A stretch of 39,597 nt of DNA from Klebsormidium nitens (taxonomy: Eukaryota > Plantae > Klebsormidiophyceae): contig DF237213.1 of assembly GCA_000708835.1 (NCBI GenBank), forward strand, positions 37,585-77,181, in the 5' to 3' direction. Position numbers and translations under genes: made by a program. A model generated the notes under the pieces. The model was not told where the DNA came from, ran no database searches, and saw nothing but the letters and a program-made list of their open reading frames with translations. Shown piece after piece: positions 3,806-27,645 of this stretch; positions within the stretch are counted from its first letter, which is position 1, and each line of letters opens with the position of its first letter.

Positions 3806-4753
3806 NNNNNNNNNNNNNNNNNNNNNNNNNNNNNNNNNNNNNNNNNNNNNNNNNNNNNNNNNNNNNNNNNNNNNNNNNNNNNNNNNNNNNNNNNNNNNNN
3901 NNNNNNNNNNNNNNNNNNNNNNNNNNNNNNNNNNNNNNNNNNNNNNNNNNNNNNNNNNNNNNNNNNNNNNNNNNNNNNNNNNNNNNNNNNNNNNNNNNNN
4001 NNNNNNNNNNNNNNNNNNNNNNNNNNNNNNNNNNNNNNNNNNNNNNNNNNNNNNNNNNNNNNNNNNNNNNNNNNNNNNNNNNNNNNNNNNNNNNNNNNNN
4101 NNNNNNNNNNNNNNNNNNNNNNNNNNNNNNNNNNNNNNNNNNNNNNNNNNNNNNNNNNNNNNNNNNNNNNNNNNNNNNNNNNNNNNNNNNNNNNNNNNNN
4201 NNNNNNNNNNNNNNNNNNNNNNNNNNNNNNNNNNNNNNNNNNNNNNNNNNNNNNNNNNNNNNNNNNNNNNNNNNNNNNNNNNNNNNNNNNNNNNNNNNNN
4301 NNNNNNNNNNNNNNNNNNNNNNNNNNNNNNNNNNNNNNNNNNNNNNNNNNNNNNNNNNNNNNNNNNNNNNNNNNNNNNNNNNNNNNNNNNNNNNNNNNNN
4401 NNNNNNNNNNNNNNNNNNNNNNNNNNNNNNNNNNNNNNNNNNNNNNNNNNNNNNNNNNNNNNNNNNNNNNNNNNNNNNNNNNNNNNNNNNNNNNNNNNNN
4501 NNNNNNNNNNNNNNNNNNNNNNNNNNNNNNNNNNNNNNNNNNNNNNNNNNNNNNNNNNNNNNNNNNNNNNNNNNNNNNNNNNNNNNNNNNNNNNNNNNNN
4601 NNNNNNNNNNNNNNNNNNNNNNNNNNNNNNNNNNNNNNNNNNNNNNNNNNNNNNNNNNNNNNNNNNNNNNNNNNNNNNNNNNNNNNNNNNNNNNNNNNNN
4701 NNNNNNNNNNNNNNNNNNNNNNNNNNNNNNNNNNNNNNNNNNNNNNNNNNNNN
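3806..4753. other. Assembly gap (948 N)
   Basis: Run of n characters. Confidence 1.
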
Positions 4754-5116
4754 GCTCAGATGGTCGAGCCATTGTCTCGTCGCCCTGCCAGCGCTGCCAT
4801 GGTGGTCGAACTAGCGCATCTTATGGTGTCCACGCTGATCCGTTTGCCATTCGCAGGTCTAGGAGTTTATCAACTGGACAAGCACGGCCATGCTCACTGG
4901 TTGCATAACGTCATTGCATGACAACTTTTGGAACCCTAACCTACCTAGATTGTCCAGTCGGTGGCACTTTGAGCTCGTCTGGCGCGCCTCCTTGAGTATC
5001 CAGTGTTTGGGAAGTGCTGCCTCTTCCGCAGCAGAGCGTTCGAGCTGGGCACCGGCACTTTTTCGCTCCAGCTCCAAGTTGCTGACCCCTGTCCCGCCAA
5101 CTGTGGAAGGGCCACG

Positions 5117-16662: not shown

Positions 16663-17316
16663 CTACTCTTTCTTTGCCTCTGAGAAATATGCATCTAGAT
16701 CACTGTTCAGCTGCTCGGCTGACGGCGCTGGCGCCCCTCTTCCCCGGCCCCTGCCCCTCCCGCGCACTGCGCCCCTGCCCCTGCCTCCACCCCCCCGGCC
16801 TACAGCCGCTGCTCCCCTGGCTGCCCGCCCTCCTCCCCTGCCCACCACTATGCCTGTCTTTCCCCCCCTCCTGGCTGCCAGGCCGGGCCGCTTGGGCAGT
16901 GCCAGCCCAAAGCCTGCAGCAACAGCAGCGGCGCCGTCCTTGCGACGCACCGGGATCACCTTCTGCCCCAGGCTGCCCCTTCCACGCCCCCGGCTGCCGC
17001 CCCCCCTGACCGCTCCACCATCAATCGGAGCAGGTGCGTGTCCTAGCTCTTCAGGCGCCCCTGCTGCCCCTTTCCGTTTTGCTGTCAGCTTGTCATACCG
17101 GCCCTGCGTGGCCCGGTCTGCTGCCTCCGCTCGCCGGATGGCGAGGCCCGCAGCTTTGGCCTTCTCCCGCTGCTGAGCCAGCTGCTTGAACCTTTCATCA
17201 AGCGTCGACGGCGCAGCAGCCTTTTCATTGCTGCCAAGGACAAACCGTGGGCCGTCATCTTCTGTAACTGAAGCCTGCCCACCACCCTGTCGTCCCTTTC
17301 CTTTTCGTCGAGCCAT
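16663..17316 (-). CDS. RGG-rich RNA-binding protein with C-terminal UAP56-binding/FoP-type motif (CHTOP/UIF/ALY-like), 217 aa, single exon
   Basis: ATG 17316 to stop 16663. It has an N-terminal STLDERF motif, many RGG/RGR repeats and a C-terminal SAEQLNSDLDAYF, typical of CHTOP/ALYREF C-terminal UBM motifs. Confidence 0.78.
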   Translation of the reverse strand: MARRKGKGRQGGGQASVTEDDGPRFVLGSNEKAAAPSTLDERFKQLAQQREKAKAAGLAIRRAEAADRATQGRYDKLTAKRKGAAGAPEELGHAPAPIDGGAVRGGGSRGRGRGSLGQKVIPVRRKDGAAAVAAGFGLALPKRPGLAARRGGKTGIVVGRGGGRAARGAAAVGRGGGGRGRGAVRGRGRGRGRGAPAPSAEQLNSDLDAYFSEAKKE

Positions 17317-18397: not shown

Positions 18398-18875
18398 CGA
18401 AAGTTGAAGCAAACTTCCTGCGCATGAGCTGACCGGCGCAGGCATTCTCGTCAGAGGTTACTTGCAAACCTTCAAACTTACGTTCCATTACTGGTGCAGC
18501 AGTGGTCGGGGGAGAGGGGCGGGAAGCGAGGCGCCGTATTTGATGTGGACAGATTTCAGGGTGTTCTAGGGGAGCCGCTCTGCTTGACAAGGCCTTCGAA
18601 AACTGTTCAACCGTCGCTCTCCCGGGCACTTACGTCAAGAAGCGTGATGCAAACCTCAGCAAAACCGTCGTGAGTTAACCTTGCCTTTGCAAATGAAGTC
18701 GATCATGTTGCTGCTGGCTGTGCGTGCATTTCTTGGCAAAATGGCGCCAGCACCTGCTGGGCTCTTACTAGATGCTAGCTAGTGGTAAGCTCTCCAAGCT
18801 GGCATACAAAGCTGGCGTACAAACATCAAAGTAAGTGATATGATTTTCCCTACTGGGATCTGATGTGACTCCACA

Positions 18876-21800
18876 ATGATGGAGCACGGCGGCAGTTCTT
18901 CGAGGTTGCGCTCTTCCCAGAGTGGTGGCTTTCGCGCTGGTTCCAAGGCCACCCATTATGGACATGCTCCTGGTGTCAGCTCGCTGTCAGCCACCTCGGG
19001 GCGGCCCAGTCAGATAGGCGATAGGGAATTGAGCAAGCATGCTCCAATGTCTGCAGCCAGCTCGGCAAAGGCTTCACAACCTGCTGCTTCCAGCTCTGGC
19101 AGTCTTTCTTTCGAGCAAACAGCGGTGGCGTGGACGGATATCGAAGCTGGGGAGGCTGTCGGCTCAGAGGGGCCTGCGCAGAGCATCGCACAGAGTATGA
19201 GGAGAATGTTTCCCCCTGCACAACCACCCGCTCCGGACAACCAACCTGAACTGTTACAGTCAGCTGTGAGTCGGAGGCCAGCCGGGAATGGGGAGGAGTT
19301 TATCATGAGTCCATCGCCACTAGCCATCGCACTAGCCAAAAAAGGCTCCTACTCAAGCCCAGCCGACACACAACCAACAGAGGTAGCAAGCTCTAAGAAA
19401 GGCTCAGGAGCTGAGCAGAGGTCGCTGGCGCCTGCTGGTAGCAGCAGGAGGGCACGCTCAATGCGTGAGGCCAGCAACTTGAAGTTGTCTATTGGGGCTG
19501 ACCATCAAAGCATGACTACTCAGAATGACCGACAAGAACCTTCAAAGGCGTTCAGTCAGAAGAGATCGCTGCTAGATGCACCACTCGCTCCCACTATTCC
19601 TGCCCCCACACATTCGTCGGAGTGGCCCTCGTTGCATTCTGGTGCCAGGCCAAGATCGAACAGTGGTCTTTCAGAGCGCCATGTTGCACCACCAAGTGCG
19701 AGTCGGCATGGTACAGCAGCGTCGTCTTCAGCAGAGCACCCCACGTTGCAGCAGGGTCCCCCTCAGCTGCCATCTGCAGCCCGCGGCTTTGCTCCTGGAG
19801 AGCAAGGAAGACCAGGCCCCATGCACGGGATGGTTGCGGTGCCCCCCATCTTGGCGGAGTGGGTGACCTCCCCCGATGCTGCGGATGTGCTGGCCAAGAT
19901 CCTGGGAGTGGCACGCGCACGCCTGCGGGGCGTGGAGCAGAACGCTGTGCGGTTTGAAGCAGAGGAGGAAGAGGCGGTGCAAGAAGCGCAGGGGCTGCTG
20001 CAGGTGAGACCAAGCTCAAGTAGATAGAGTCAGAGAAGTTACGCAATCTTTCCAAGAGCAGCTTTCTCCTCAAAGTCGGAGCGTCTCAATCAAGTTTGGC
20101 AAACCGCTTGCACTGCTCTTTACTGCATTATGCTTGCTCCTAGTAATGGTCGCATTTGGATGTGGAGCACGCCATTTTTAATATGTGGGGGGTTAGCCCT
20201 TCGCCCGCAGGCTAGATGTGGAGCATGCCAATAAGAACTGTACAGACACCGGTGGTGAAGGTGGTCGGATGAAAGGCTCAGTTCCGGTCGTTTCCTGTCT
20301 GCTGTGTAGAGCCATTTGGATCACAAGGCGGGCGTGGAGGAGAAGCGGCGTGTAAAGCGCGAGCTGGAGCTGATTGAGCAGGAGTTCAGGGACGGGCTGC
20401 GCTGTGAATTCCAGGTCCCCCTGCAAGCGCTGCCCCATGTGTTTGGCGTAAATGGCAGCAACCTGGCGCAGGTGAGATGTTGTTGGGGGGTGGTTGCATT
20501 TGAACCTGGAGGATGGGTACTGAGGTTCTCTGCTTGCATACTCCAAACGATTGAGTGTAATCACAGTTTGACATAGGTTCATTCTTTCCAAACAAGTGGC
20601 ATTGTTTGCACGCTCCAAACTTTCACAATGCTAAGTGAAGTGCCTATCATCAGTCTCCTGCCTTGGGGCAATATTGTTGGGGAGCTGATTCTGAGGCCCC
20701 TGTTGTTGTCTGGCCCCCCCAGGTGCAGGCGGAGTGCGGGGTGGAGCGCGTGCTGGTGGACTCTGACGAGAGCATGGTGCGCATCGTGGGGCGCTCCAGG
20801 GAGGCGGTGGCCGCGGCGCGCTCCCGCCTGGAGTACGACGTGTGGTGCCTGCCAACGGCGCGCGACCTCTTGCAGAGCAGTGGCAACAAGATCGAGGCCC
20901 TGCTGGAGCGCGTGCGCACCAAGAACAAGCTGGCGGAGGCAGAGGTGCAGGAGGACGAACAAGGCCCCTGGGTAAGAGGCGACCTGGCACCGTCATATAT
21001 GCAATCAATTCAGCTACGCTTGGGGCTGAGCCCTCTGCAGTGAAGCTTCGGATTCCCAGTGTCTCTGGCCTCGCTGATGGCCTTCGTTTTGCTGGTGCAA
21101 CTCCTGTCCCCCTTGACGGCGGGAACAGAAAATCTGCTGAGTTTGCCGAATTTTACAATCCCTGCTGGCTAGAAGATGACCTGAGCGGGGTGGTGGCCTG
21201 CAGGTGAGCCTGGTGGGCTGCAAGGCGGTGTTGGCGGAGGCAGCCCGTGTGGTCGAGGGCCAGCTGCAGCTATTCGAGATGATGCAAGCAGAGGTATGGT
21301 GTCCTTGTTCCACCATTGACGGACTCTCGCCTTCCCCATCTCAAATGACAGTTGGCGGTCATGCAAGCACTTTCTGGAATGGGCGACTTTCTTTGACAAC
21401 ATGTTAGAAGCCTGTGATACTTCCAGTTATTGCCGGGCAGCTGTTTTCGACCTTTTTTGGGCCAATTCGTGCTTCTGTTCTTGTGGTTTTAGGCAACTTC
21501 TCACATTTGGTGTTTCTTGTGCAGGCCGCTGAAGTTGCTGACGTCAGCGAGGAGCAGGTACAGCGGGTCAGCCGCACCTGGGGAGTGCAGCCCCGCTCAG
21601 GACCCCCTGCAGGCGGGCCGCCCTTCTTTGCGGCCCCTGCCCGCTTGCCGGCCAACACAGCAAGAGCCCCATCAACCGCGCAGTCCCGGGAGCCAAGGGC
21701 GGCAGCACAGGCAACGACTGGCGAGTGGGAGGACATTGAACCCCCATTGATGGGTCCAGATCAGAAGCATGCATCGGGATGGGGGTCGCAGACTGGGAGC

Positions 21801-24800
21801 CCGGGGCAAGGGCCGGCGGGGAGCGCAGCACGTCCGACTCAACTTGCGCGGTTACAGCCAAGAACGGGAGCAGGAGCGGCAATGGGTGCAACCTCCAATG
21901 GGGTCGTGGACGGGACCGCGGGTGTTGCGCCCACAGGGTGGGGCCAAGCTGCAGCAGGTGGTCATCCTGGGTCGACAACTGGGCACCGGACTGGACCTGC
22001 ACTCGGACAGGGTTCCCTGCCAGCTGTCAGCCAGCCAGCGCGTGAGGCAAGCGGTCCGACTCAAGTGGCGGGAGGGTCTGGTGGGTGGGGAGAGGTGCCG
22101 GCGTTCCAGCATGATGTTCGAGGAGGGGCAGAGCCACGGATCGTAACCCGAAGGCCCCTCGCGGCGACCCCGAATCGGCTGGCCGCCAGCGTGCTGGCCA
22201 CTGTTGTGAGCTCACGCCAGAAGGAGGGGGCACAGATCAGCAGGGGCAGAGGGGGTCTGGGGGCATCTCCGGAGAAGGGCGGTCGAGCAAACAGGAGCGG
22301 GGCGGAGGGAGAGATGAAAGGACGGGCGACCGGGGGTCAGATTGCGGCAGCGCAAGGAGCGGAGCAAGATTATCAGGGGAGCAGCCTGGGCGCGCGTGAT
22401 GAAGAGCCCCCTGGCGCAACTGGCTGGGGGGACACGCCAGCTGCAAACAGTGGGGGACTGCAAGTCGAGCGGGGCAGGGGGCAGATCAAGGAGGCGGCAG
22501 CCGAGAGCGGGTTCTGGACGCTGGGGTCCCCTCCAGGCGCCACCCCCGCTCCCCCGCTGGACCAGGAATCGGTCAAGAGCACCTGGGACGCTGCCTGGCC
22601 CAACTCTGCCGTCGCAGGGCGCACCAACTGGGGGCAGCAGCGGGGGCCCGAGGGCCAGACGATCCTGGAAGGGAGGGGATCCGCCCAGAGAAGCGGCCCG
22701 CCCGGTCCTGCCGCCCCCGCGCCCCTCCCTGGGCCTGCGGCCAGCTCTGAGCATGCCTCCTCGGGGTGGAGAGGGCAGCCGCGCTCGGCCGCCTCAGGGT
22801 CTCTCAGCTCGTCTCAGCCGGGGGCCTCCATCAGCAGGGGCGAGCCCAGCACCGCAAGCTCGGGGCCTGCCCCGCGCCGCAGAGTGGAGAGGATCAACGC
22901 CAACGCGGTGCCGCCCCCTGACGTGTCCACTCTTCTGCGCGCTCCGTCCGGCAAAGCGGGCGTTCGGCCCGTTCTTGCTGCTCCCTCGTCGGCTCCTGCT
23001 GCGGCGGAGCCACTCATCAGCAGGAGCGCGGCCGCTGGGGCTCCTAGCAGGCAGCCAGGTGCTGCGCCGCCAGCCAAGGCCCCCGCGTACAGGCCGGAGG
23101 ATGCGGTCGTTCTCGTGACTGCCAGCGAGGGGAGCGGCTCGGGGCGGGTACCTCCCCAGAGCAGGCCTCTCATCGGCCGGCCTAGCACCACCCGGTCTCA
23201 GCCGCAGGCACCCAAGGCGTCTCCTGTGGTAAGCCTGGAACGGGAAGCTCCCCGGACACCTGCGCAAGACGTGCGGTCCGCCAGCCTGCCCAAGGCTTCC
23301 GGTGCCTCCAAAGGCAGCGTGTCGGAGCGGCCTGAGCGGAAGGCGCTGCTGCGGGCGGTGTCATCGGCGTCGAGCACAGGCAGCACCAGCAACTCGAAGC
23401 TGGCAAACAGGGGACAGGGGGAGGTCGCGGGACGGGGGAACGGGCCAGGACAGGTGGCGCCCCTGGGAGCCTTCCAAGAGGATACGCAAGAAGGGGCGAA
23501 CAAGGAGGCCCGACGCTTGGAGCGCACGCAGGAGGAGGCGTCCCTGCCAGAGGGGAATCAGGAACAGGAGGGAGAGCAAAAGATGGTCAGTGGAAGTGCC
23601 GAAGGGGCGCACGATCCTATGTCAGCGAGGGTGCACGCTGGGGCGAAACAAGAAGCTGAGGGTAGAGGCGCTTCCGTGAAGTCGGTACGGGGGAGCGAAG
23701 TGGAGCCGCTGGGCCCGGCAGAAGTGGCGGAAGCGCGGGATGCAGCACCGGATGCTCCAGGGAGAGGTGAGAGAACCGAGCGGACGGAGGCTGCCACACT
23801 ACGTGGCCAGGACGGAGAGGAGGGGGCGGTCGCTGGCAGCAGCGACAGCGATGGAGTGCAGGCAGTCGAGCAAGGTGAGGCCGCGACCCCCGCAGGTGGC
23901 ACCCCTGCAGGAGACAAGGACAAGAGCGCCACAGGAGGGCCAACGAGCGAGTGCGGAGCCGAGGAGCAGCAACCAGCGGCGGATGCAAAGGAACCGGTAG
24001 AACTGACCCCCAGGGGCAGTGCGCCAGACTCGGTATCCCCGGGCTTTGCTACGGGTACATTTCCGGCTTCTGCGGCTGCGCAGCTACTAAAGCGGTCCAC
24101 GCCCCTTCGTGCTGAGGCACCGGAGTTTGTGGCGGGGGCCGCACGAGCGTGGTCCCCCCTTCGAGCTGAGGCCCAAGTCTTTGTTGCAGGCGTGGGGCTG
24201 GTGGAGGACCCTGCCGCATCGCACGGGGCCTCAAGAAATGCAGCTTGCCCAGGCCCGAAGGCAGGAAACGAGAGCAAGGCAAAGGACGAGGCGAGAGGAG
24301 AGATCAACGGGCGGAGCGGGGGTGGGCAGACCCGCGCGCGGAAGTGGGCCTCAGAGACGAGCGAAGAGGAGCAGCGTTTTGAAGAGGGGCATGCTGCGCA
24401 GCACGGGGCCCCGCAGGGAGAAGGACCGACGAGAAACGGCCACGAAGAGGTTGCTCGGGAGGAAGCCGCTTCTGTAAGTCAGCAGGGACGCGTTGCTGGC
24501 GGGCCTTCGGGGTGGGGCGACGCGAAGAAGCCGGAGGCGGAGGAGAAACCGTCAAAATGGGGGACAGCGAATCATGTGAACGGAGGCCTGGAGGAGGTGG
24601 AGGACCACCCGTTTGCGCAGAGGACGGGGCAGGGCGCGCGGCCGGAATCCGGCATGCGGCCGTGGTCAGACGAGGCGGCGGCTCCGGCTGCGCCGCGCGG
24701 CAAGGGCGCGGGCAGCGGTAGCTGGGTGAGCGACGACTCGGGGAGCGTGCGCAGCGTGGGCGTGGACGTGGGCCGCTGGGCGGAGGAGGCGGCCATCAGC

Positions 24801-27645
24801 ACGCTGTCGGAGCACGAGGCGCTGCTGCACGACAGCCCGCACGGCTTCGAGGGCGCCACCGACAGCGGCAGCGGGCGCGGGGGCAGCACGGGGAGCAGCC
24901 GCGCGGGCAGCAGCGAGGGGCGGCGCGGGCCGGTGTACCGCATGAAGATGCAAAAGTTCCAGCTGGCAGCCATCAAGGCCAACCAGGTCGGGGGGGGGCC
25001 GCCCACCGGGTGGGAGGCCGTGCCCGAGGAGGGGGCCACGCCGGGGAAGGGCCTGCCAGGCACCGAGCCAGGTAGAGATTAAGACTTACTTTAATATGCC
25101 AGAGGCTTGCTGCAGATCTCCCTGAGCATCTCACGTGTCACTCCCTAGTCTATCACTTCGTGGTTAGCGTACCCACACCACTGTCCCATGTCTCTCTTTG
25201 TTTGGCGGTTGCTAAAACCTCGTGTTCAGGGGGAATATACACCATAGTTTTCGGGTTCCCTTCTACGCGTCTCCTTTCGTGGTGACAGTGAAATGCTCGA
25301 CTCATCGAAATTTGCAACAGGCACTTTGAAGCCCGTCTGACTCGGGTTGTTTCTCCATACAGGCCCCTCCGTCGCCACTGACGCGCCGCCTGCTGCCATG
25401 CATTCCGAGCCTCAGGACGTCCGTGACTGGGTGCGCCCCAAGCTGAGGCCGGACAGAGCAGGCCCTCTGTTGGACACTCCGGGACCCAGCAGGTCAGACT
25501 GCCGGCTTCTGATTGTCACCCGCTCATGCAGTCTTCCGTTAACATAGACTCTAAAGAGTCCCCCAATATTCTGGTTTGTGTTTTAGAATGCGTCGCCCTT
25601 CTCCTGCTTCCGTAACAGGTTCATTTTTCCGTGCCTCGTCCATCTCGTTCTGCTCCCTGTTCGTCAGCGTTGTGCTTGTTCCAGCTCCACCCAAGCTTAC
25701 CCGGCCCACTTTTTGCAGCAGGCGGCACTTGCCGGTGCCCGTTCGTGAATCTTTCCTGTTTCCATATTCACAGTTCTCCTGGTCCAGTCGCCTCACTCTT
25801 GCGTCTTCTTGCAGGCGGCTAGCTGTGCCCCCTGCCGCAAGAGCGCCCCACAGGGCAGAGCCCGAGAGGCAGGACCGGCCGCCTGCGCCAGCTCAGCCCA
25901 CAGCCGCAGATGAAAGAGCAGAGCCAGAAGGGGGTTTTCCTGCAGAAGAGGCAGTCCGAGCAACGGGATGGGGTGATGCGGAGGGGGCAGAGCAAGAAGC
26001 GTTGGCAGGGACTGAGGAGGTCGAGGCACGTGGTTGGACCGAGCCGCCACGAAGGCGAGAAGAGGCCAGCAAGGCAGGCGCGCACCGGGGGGAGAGGCGC
26101 GGCGGCAGGCTGGACGAGAGGGCGCGATCAGCCGAGGTGTACAACGAAGCGAACGGGGGTTCAGCTCAGGAGACAGACGTGGCGGTGGGAGCGGAAGAGC
26201 CCGGGGCGCCAACGGGGTGGGGAGGCGACGTGGCGGGGCCGTCGGCAGTGCAGAGTGAGCCGAAGGCGTACCCTCAGGATGAGAGGGGAGCATCAGGGGG
26301 CCTGGGTGTCGCGGATTACGCCGAAATTAGCGAGGAGCGCGAGTATGGCATGGCACCGGCAGACGAGGCGCAGCCAACCGGCTGGCCGGAAGAGGGGAAG
26401 GCCGAGCGGGGAGGGCCGTACGAGGGGCACACAGGCGTTGCGGCTGGCGAAGCCACGAGAGAAGACCCGCACGCTGACGTCAGCATGGAGTACGAGGAGT
26501 CGTGGGACGGCGAGGATGACGCAAGCGCGTCGGAAGCGGAGAGCTCTCCTCGGGGCGGCTTGCAGAAGGCGCCGCTTCGGATTGGGGCGCAGGACGTGCG
26601 GCTGGTGGAGGGGACGCTGCCGGCCACAGCGCTCAAGCGCAGCACCGTCAATCCGACGCTGCTGCCAGGGACACAGCGCGGCGCGGGGCAAGCGCAGGAA
26701 GCGGCGAGCCGCATGGAGGTCGGGGTGCAGGATGCACGGCTGCTGCCCGTGGAACGGTCAGAGAGGCTGGAGAGATCGGGACAGCGCAAGAAAAAAGACC
26801 GGAAGGGGAAGGGGAGCAGGGAGAAGAAGGAGCGGAGGCGCGAGGAGAGGAGGCTCGAGGAGAGGAGGCGCCGCTCGGGTGGTTCGAGAACGCCGCAGGG
26901 GGCCTCGCCTGGCGGGGACCTCAGCGAGAGAGGCGTGCTACCCGGTCCTTTGCGGCAGACGCCCGGTGCCAGTGGGAATAACACGCCGTCGCCGTCCCGA
27001 GTTCCCCCCTCCGGGTGGAATGCGGGGGGGGGATCCCCGGTGACGCCCGCCAGCATCCTGCAGGCCGTGGAGCAGCCGAGCCCCGGGGGGCGGAGCAGCC
27101 GGCTGAGGAAGGAAGGAGGGGGCAGGGGGACCAAGGAGCAGGCACAAACAGCGAATGAAGGACGGACTTGGCAGGACGCGGCAGAGGCGTCCGTGCAAGA
27201 GCGGGCCAGCAATCGCGCAGGTGCATCGTTGGCAGCCGACACGGAGGCGGGCATTCTGGGGAAGGGCGGGCCGGTGGCGCCGAGCAGGACGAGCGAGGAT
27301 TGGCCGCGGGACTCCACTGGAAGACGAGCCAGCAGTCAGCGCCGCAGTGCCGGGAATGCACAGGGTACCCAACCCGATGCCGCGAGAGACGTGAGCCAGG
27401 ACAGCAGCCACCTACAGCGAGAAGAGGGGTCGTCCCAAAAGCGCGAAGTAGGCAGCGTTGGAATCGAGGCAGCGGGGGGGGGCAAGGAGAGCGACGCTGG
27501 GGGGGCCGGGGGTGATGCAGACAAGCAGAGCAGTGGCAGCGGCGGGCAGCGCGGCAGCAGTGGCCAGTCAGCCAAGCGGGCGGTCCGACCGTCGGGAGTG
27601 TGGTCTGTGCGAGATAGGCGAGGGACGTCGACCAGTTCTGCGTGA
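18876..27645 (+). CDS. Very large (~2,378 aa) RNA-binding scaffold: FMRP/FXR-like KH0-KH1-KH2 module plus long disordered GW/WG-rich tail with two PAM2-like motifs, 7 exons
   Basis: Exons 18876-20003, 20310-20471, 20723-20971, 21204-21293, 21525-25071, 25363-25492, 25815-27645; all GT-AG and phase-consistent (7,137 nt). KH1 reads EFQVPLQALPHVFGVNGSNLAQVQAECGVERVLVD...VRIVGRSREAVAAARSRLE (GxxG = GVNG). Confidence 0.8.

Follow-up and report, generated by a model that had tools for sequence, protein, structure and literature searches.

FMRP is usually treated as an animal, neuron-centered protein. In animals, FMRP, FXR1, and FXR2 carry an N-terminal tandem of Agenet/Tudor domains (Tudor_FRX1 plus Agenet) and a contiguous module in which a KH0 domain without a GxxG loop is followed by a helical linker, a KH1 domain with this loop, and a KH2 domain; a long helix after KH2 then leads into a disordered C-terminal region. 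The KH0 domain of FMRP is thought to act as a platform or protein-contact surface, and FMRP is known to associate with AGO/RISC. Our full-text literature search returned animal FMRP work alone and no paper on a non-animal FMRP relative. What was known already is that automatic database annotation calls at least one protist member FXR1; what is new is an FMRP-type homologous core in a new architecture.

We analyzed a 39,597-nucleotide stretch of Klebsormidium nitens contig DF237213.1 (assembly GCA_000708835.1, positions 37,585 to 77,181 of the forward strand), called the window here; all coordinates refer to it. Positions 19830 to 21560 are part of a spliced, expressed plus-strand gene, KFL_002640140. 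Our reading, to which we give a probability of roughly 0.8, is that this gene encodes a protein with a KH0-long helix-KH1-KH2 core homologous to the animal FMRP/FXR core, that this core belongs to a eukaryote-wide family predating animals, and that the protein would serve as an mRNA-bound repression scaffold. The module has the order and spacing of animal FMRP, FXR1, and FXR2, with a KH0-like domain lacking GxxG, a KH1 that has it, and a KH1-KH2 packing in the predicted model that resembles 2QND, and a long helix and a disordered region likewise follow KH2. Unlike the animal proteins, the K. nitens protein has no N-terminal tandem Agenet/Tudor domains, its KH2 has neither GxxG nor the long variable loop, and in place of FXMRP1_C_core and a typical RGG box there is a GW/WG tail of about 1,700 amino acids or more. 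Identity of the module to animal members is only about 20 to 26%. In its length, disorder, dispersed conserved GW/WG tryptophans, and PAM2-like motif, the protein would be a functional analog of GW182/TNRC6 and the plant GW/WG Argonaute-hook proteins. We draw this likeness from motif counts and tryptophan conservation and claim no sequence homology, and AGO binding is putative. Unlike in GW182/TNRC6, the folded RNA-binding part is an FMRP-type KH core and not an RRM or UBA domain.

The exons of the KH region on the plus strand are one ending at 20003, three at 20310 to 20471, 20723 to 20971, and 21204 to 21293, and one starting at 21525. Read from the DNA, all four introns between them are GT..AG and phase 0. 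Once they were removed, the KH0-like, linker, KH1, and KH2 peptides from which the initial annotation had proposed an FMRP-type module all lay at the positions it gave, with the peptide MVAV beginning at 19830. The features are as follows, where L001 is a diverged relative carrying the KH gene, from a JGI metagenome contig, and P0001 is the public K. nitens protein.

18876..19826, plus strand: low-complexity N terminus within the first coding exon; no Pfam family, and transcript contigs are unbroken across it.
19821..20003, plus strand: KH0-like domain at the end of exon 1, a GxxG-less type-I KH (beta-alpha-alpha-beta-beta and the start of alpha'); model residues 3 to 63, pLDDT about 97.
20004..20309, plus strand: intron 1, GT..AG, 306 nt; joint in contigs of four runs, same position in L001.
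20310..20399, plus strand: rest of KH0 alpha' and the helical linker, a single helix (model residues 52 to 90) colinear with the linker in FMRP 129-213.
20400..20471, plus strand: first half of KH1 (beta1, alpha1, GxxG loop, start of alpha2); Pfam KH_1 at E = 3e-7 on the spliced protein.
20472..20722, plus strand: intron 2, GT..AG, 251 nt; splits KH1, joint in transcript contigs.
20723..20830, plus strand: second half of KH1 (alpha2, beta2, beta', alpha'); aligns to FMR1/FXR1 KH1.
20834..20971, plus strand: first half of a degenerate KH2 without GxxG; aligned to FMR1 KH2 in 2qnd.
20972..21203, plus strand: intron 3, GT..AG, 232 nt; joint in transcript contigs.
21204..21293, plus strand: second half of KH2 (beta', alpha'); aligns to the C-terminal strand and helix of FMRP KH2.
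21294..21524, plus strand: intron 4, GT..AG, 231 nt; joint in transcript contigs.
21525..25079, plus strand: continuation of the post-KH2 helix, then the GW/WG-rich disordered tail; no Pfam family, and the P0001 model continues downstream.

In transcript contigs from four runs of four studies, precisely the four introns were missing (skips of 306, 251, 232, and 231 nt), and a spliced mRNA of the KH gene therefore exists. In run X1, a 204-nt low-depth contig lay inside intron 2 (20482 to 20685), which is probably unspliced pre-mRNA or a DNA trace. The long ORF downstream of the module shares 98% identity with NCBI protein KFL_002640140 (P0001, 2,054 amino acids, "K Homology domain-containing protein"), whose splicing across the KH region is that of the contigs. 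We used P0001 for work on the spliced module; its module agrees with both the translated exons and the joints seen in RNA. Upstream, the P0001 annotation places the start codon at an internal Met and has a further intron within the first coding exon (...LLQSA joined to QGPPQ...). Transcript contigs begin at about 18725 to 18787 and are unbroken from about 18725 to 20001. Because the contigs of four studies are continuous over 18725 to 20003, where P0001 takes out that intron, the true N terminus is probably the Met at 18876, about 320 amino acids ahead of the KH module.

The upstream boundary of the KH gene is a minus-strand ORF at 16663 to 17316 that carries RG-rich repeats together with a FoP_duplication domain of the Friend of PRMT1/CHTOP-like kind (E = 5e-5, and at 24.2 bits just below the Pfam cutoff of 24.6 bits). 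Elsewhere, the window has an assembly gap of 948 N in a row, which is probably the reason for the apparent GC of 0.13 in bin 4001 to 5000. The initial annotation had seen no Agenet/Tudor domains upstream of the module, and this held: Pfam found none in the 376-amino-acid first exon or in P0001:1-120, and there is no room for them upstream because the transcripts begin at about 18725 and the minus-strand neighbor lies ahead of them. None of the Pfam models for KH_9 (the FMRP KH0 model), Agenet, Tudor_FRX1, and FXMRP1_C_core matches this protein.

The gene structure is conserved in L001, where introns interrupt the gene at the same four places as in K. nitens and the exons have the same lengths of 162, 249, and 90 nt. 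The module exons are 51 to 73% identical between the two, from 51% in the KH0-like exon part to 73% in the second half of KH2, and the low-complexity flanks are 32 to 41% identical, with 32% in the N-terminal region. At the GxxG position of KH1, K. nitens has GVNG (20445 to 20456) and L001 has GPQG; both glycines (G109 and G112) are the same in every sequence of the family alignment. The absence of GxxG from KH2, also remarked on in the initial annotation, is common to both species, which have NKIE and SEQV, respectively, at the loop position, where relatives in the family alignment have GxGG.

We ran AlphaFold2 with a 31-sequence family alignment (A2) on the 236-residue module (P0001 95-330). 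The model has a mean pLDDT of 97.3 and a pTM of 0.80, and it contains three type-I KH folds. The KH0-like fold (beta-alpha-alpha-beta-beta-alpha) takes up model residues 3 to 49 plus its last helix, which runs on to residue 90; KH1 spans residues 94 to 153; and KH2 spans residues 155 to 206, with its helices 1 and 2 predicted as one (residues 164 to 185) and a long helix behind it. A separate model of the KH0-plus-linker part likewise reached a pLDDT of 97.3. Single exons matched no Pfam KH family, because intron 2 splits KH1, and PDB searches with them were nearly blank. The spliced module matched the general KH_1 model alone among Pfam families (E = 3e-7).

The first domain, described as KH0-like in the initial annotation, requires the most care. 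A profile of the KH0 and linker (A3) searched against the PDB matched FMRP residues 129 to 213 in 4qw2/4qvz, which are exactly KH0 plus linker, at E = 0.002, and 4ova at E = 0.024. Against four animal KH_9 regions, hhalign aligned A3 from the first strand through the end of the linker (96.3%, E = 1.7e-9, 95 columns, score 52); against one aphid sequence the match was weak (54%, C-terminal half only). The structure comparison of KH0 alone gave a divided answer. VIA-align put FMRP KH0 (4qvz/4ova residues 125 to 201) among the top matches, with a Z of 8.3 and an rmsd of 2.7 to 2.8 Å over 74 to 75 residues, in a tie with other KH domains and the RRM-titled entry 2diu (Z 8.5), all at a Z of 7 to 8.5. 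Foldseek with the KH0-only model returned generic KH domains (PNPase, hnRNP K, and Nova), with FMRP KH0 outside the top 50.

It follows from the profile scores that the domain could be something else, namely, a unit of KH2 plus helix that was duplicated independently in a protein whose KH1-KH2 is FMRP type, or a KH0 only analogous to that of FMRP. A3 aligned slightly better to animal KH2 plus the following helix (97.1%, score 65) than to KH0, it scored 24.9 bits against FMR1 KH2 and 21.3 bits against KH0 in the PDB search, and KH_9 gave no match. Sequence alone does not separate a "KH0" from a KH2-like unit. Because FMRP KH2 is an equally good or better match to the profile, orthology of KH0 is less secure than homology of KH1-KH2, and it rests mainly on position and colinearity. 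We nevertheless consider a nonorthologous first domain unlikely. The domain sits where KH0 sits in FMRP, with about 91 residues counted from its start to that of KH1 and presumably about the same, some 94, in FMRP; it lacks GxxG, as FMRP KH0 does; it aligns colinearly along the linker helix and on into KH1; and in the protist relatives that carry Agenet domains, this domain stands right behind them, as in FMRP. Its assignment as a putative KH0 is based on position, spacing, absence of GxxG, and the Agenet-bearing relatives. There is a hint in these comparisons that KH0 may have arisen by internal duplication of a KH2-plus-helix unit. The KH0-linker profile shares an LLE.HL.H motif with FMRP KH2 and its C-terminal helix (alignments A3, A4, and A5).

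The KH1-KH2 tandem carries FMRP-specific sequence and, in the model, FMRP-like packing. When the single module sequence was searched against all PDB chains, only FMR1 and FXR1 structures fell below an E value of 0.1: 2qnd (FMR1, 1.1e-4, with KH1 and KH2 in one stretch), 2cpq (FXR1, 6e-4), and 2fmr (FMR1 KH1, 0.045). The PDB has many more KH proteins, but no other one did so. The 31-sequence A2 profile matched 2qnd in one stretch at 3.4e-34 (121 bits), and the best match outside the FMRP family was KSRP at 3.9e-14, in two separate pieces. Foldseek on the module model also ranked 2qnd first (E = 8e-8, target TM 0.70, rmsd of 3.5 Å over 139 columns). Other KH tandems gave an rmsd of 6 to 20 Å, and the relative placement of KH1 and KH2 in the predicted model thus fits FMRP best.

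We then searched the 236-amino-acid module with phmmer against 1.84 billion proteins (representatives), which gave 155 matches at E values of ≤1e-3 and 42 at ≤1e-10, a similarity well beyond what chance would produce. Among them were an aphid "FXR1-like" protein (P0043, 2.7e-11), P0137, P0140, and P0150, in which Pfam identified Tudor_FRX1, Agenet, KH_9, KH_1, and FXMRP1_C_core, confirming them as genuine animal FXR proteins. By hhalign, the family aligned to the aphid protein over 200 colinear columns, from the last strand of KH0 to the helix behind KH2, with the linker and both KH1 and KH2 in between (99.6%, E = 2e-24), and to four animal KH1-KH2 regions at 99.8% (E = 4e-28). These results bear on whether the gene encodes a generic tandem-KH RNA-binding protein, closer to HEN4/FLK/PEP, vigilin, or PCBP types, that resembles FMRP by chance or convergence. 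Pfam, which sees general KH_1 only, would agree with such a protein. Against it, FMR1 and FXR1 are the sole single-sequence PDB matches below 0.1, they lead by 20 orders of magnitude with the family profile, and the domain orientation in the model fits 2qnd only, which makes a generic KH protein very improbable. The initial annotation had named HEN4/FLK and vigilin as the families that might match better, and had pointed to an FMRP-like order and spacing of the three domains; FMR1/FXR1 came out best by sequence, by profile, and by structure.

That annotation had presented the module as an FMRP type outside animals. It is one, but it is not isolated. Alignment A2 defines a wider eukaryotic family of FMRP-like KH0-KH1-KH2 proteins, with members in labyrinthulomycetes (Hondaea fermentalgiana, GBG23865; Mucochytrium), another stramenopile (Cantina), dinoflagellates (Yihiella and Gymnodinium), a chromerid (Vitrella, CEM18671), a haptophyte (Scyphosphaera), Rhizaria (Plasmodiophora, CEO97373), and a prasinophyte green alga (Pycnococcus, GHP03304). 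The Hondaea protein is labeled "Fragile X mental retardation syndrome-related protein 1" (FXR1) in NCBI. The module of about 230 amino acids aligned end to end with these relatives at significant E values and 20 to 32% identity, and the conserved family positions F97, G109, G112, A149, and R150 are all present in K. nitens. On this alignment evidence, the K. nitens protein falls within the wider FMRP-like family. The protist proteins share the whole module and differ in being shorter and without GW motifs and in mostly keeping GxxG in KH2. Agenet domains stand ahead of the module in 10 of the 45 proteins scanned, which gives those 10 the full Agenet-KH0-KH1-KH2 layout of FMRP.

In a maximum-likelihood tree that included the stramenopile and algal proteins, as the initial annotation had suggested, Klebsormidium grouped with Pycnococcus (support of 97/96), and the animals, alveolates, and labyrinthulomycetes formed separate clades. 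The Klebsormidium branch is long (1.56), which makes its placement less certain. The Pycnococcus clade is the nearest to Klebsormidium in this tree, and the pattern appears compatible with old vertical descent and not with transfer from animals. Recent horizontal transfer from an animal, or contamination of the assembly, has nothing in its favor other than the animal-centered reputation of the family and is extremely unlikely, given introns of algal type that a second Klebsormidium-like genome shares, expression in K. nitens runs of several studies, identity of only 20 to 35% to any relative (L001 aside), and clustering with Pycnococcus and not with animals. The FMRP-type family looks much older than animals.

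The tail behind the conserved core is disordered and spans about 1,700 amino acids or more. P0001 contains 15 GW/WG motifs, and six RGG are spread over 1,724 amino acids of tail; Pfam found no family there and no FXMRP1_C_core. We compared the tail region at 21525 to 25079 with L001 3584-7216. Of the 19 tryptophans in its first 1,185 residues, L001 keeps 17, versus 41% identity overall, and most of the conserved tryptophans lie in [ST]GW or GW[GE] contexts. This level of tryptophan conservation against a diverged background argues for functional motifs, which may be Argonaute hooks or deadenylase-binding motifs. The DNA at about 24200 to 24330 (exon E) encodes two PAM2-like motifs, LRAEAPEFVAG and LRAEAQVFVAG, which occur also in P0003. 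The annotated P0001 model splices out this stretch, and the motifs are known here from genomic DNA; one is kept in the L001 ortholog as LRAEAKVFVAG. Among the relatives compared, the core is joined to a GW-rich tail only in the Klebsormidium lineage. The others are proteins of 350 to 850 amino acids with short Q/S-, G-, or RG-rich tails and no GW motifs.

We conclude that the K. nitens gene encodes a divergent member of the FMRP-like family. On the green-lineage branch of Klebsormidium and Pycnococcus, there are no detectable Agenet domains, and on the Klebsormidium branch, the GxxG of KH2 was lost and a very long disordered tail stands in place of the short RG/G-rich tails of the relatives. 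By analogy, KH1, the sole domain with an intact GxxG loop, would bind single-stranded RNA, and KH0 together with KH2 would provide a rigid platform or a protein-contact surface. The tryptophan tail would recruit Argonaute, deadenylase, or PABP factors to the bound mRNAs, and the whole protein would join a reader of the FMRP kind to an effector arm of the GW182 kind. We infer this mechanism from what is known of the family, that is, of KH domains in general and of FMRP, and a link to AGO would run through the GW tail.

A more far-reaching proposal, speculative and in our judgment probably wrong in at least some part, is that the FMRP core, with Agenet domains in several lineages, is an ancient and possibly LECA-age mRNA-regulatory module and that in Klebsormidium it was fused to an Argonaute-hook/PAM2 arm, so that one polypeptide does the jobs of FMRP and GW182. 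If that were true, the connection between FMRP and small-RNA pathways would be ancestral and not an animal invention.

For the family, a triple-KH core in a streptophyte alga, a prasinophyte, labyrinthulomycetes, dinoflagellates, a chromerid, a haptophyte, and a plasmodiophorid points to an origin far before animals, and these organisms offer simple microbial systems in which the role of the conserved core can be studied. The protein of Klebsormidium, which has a GxxG-dead KH2, no Agenet domains, and a GW tail with conserved tryptophans, is a natural setting for separating the parts of the core that serve RNA binding from those that serve scaffolding.
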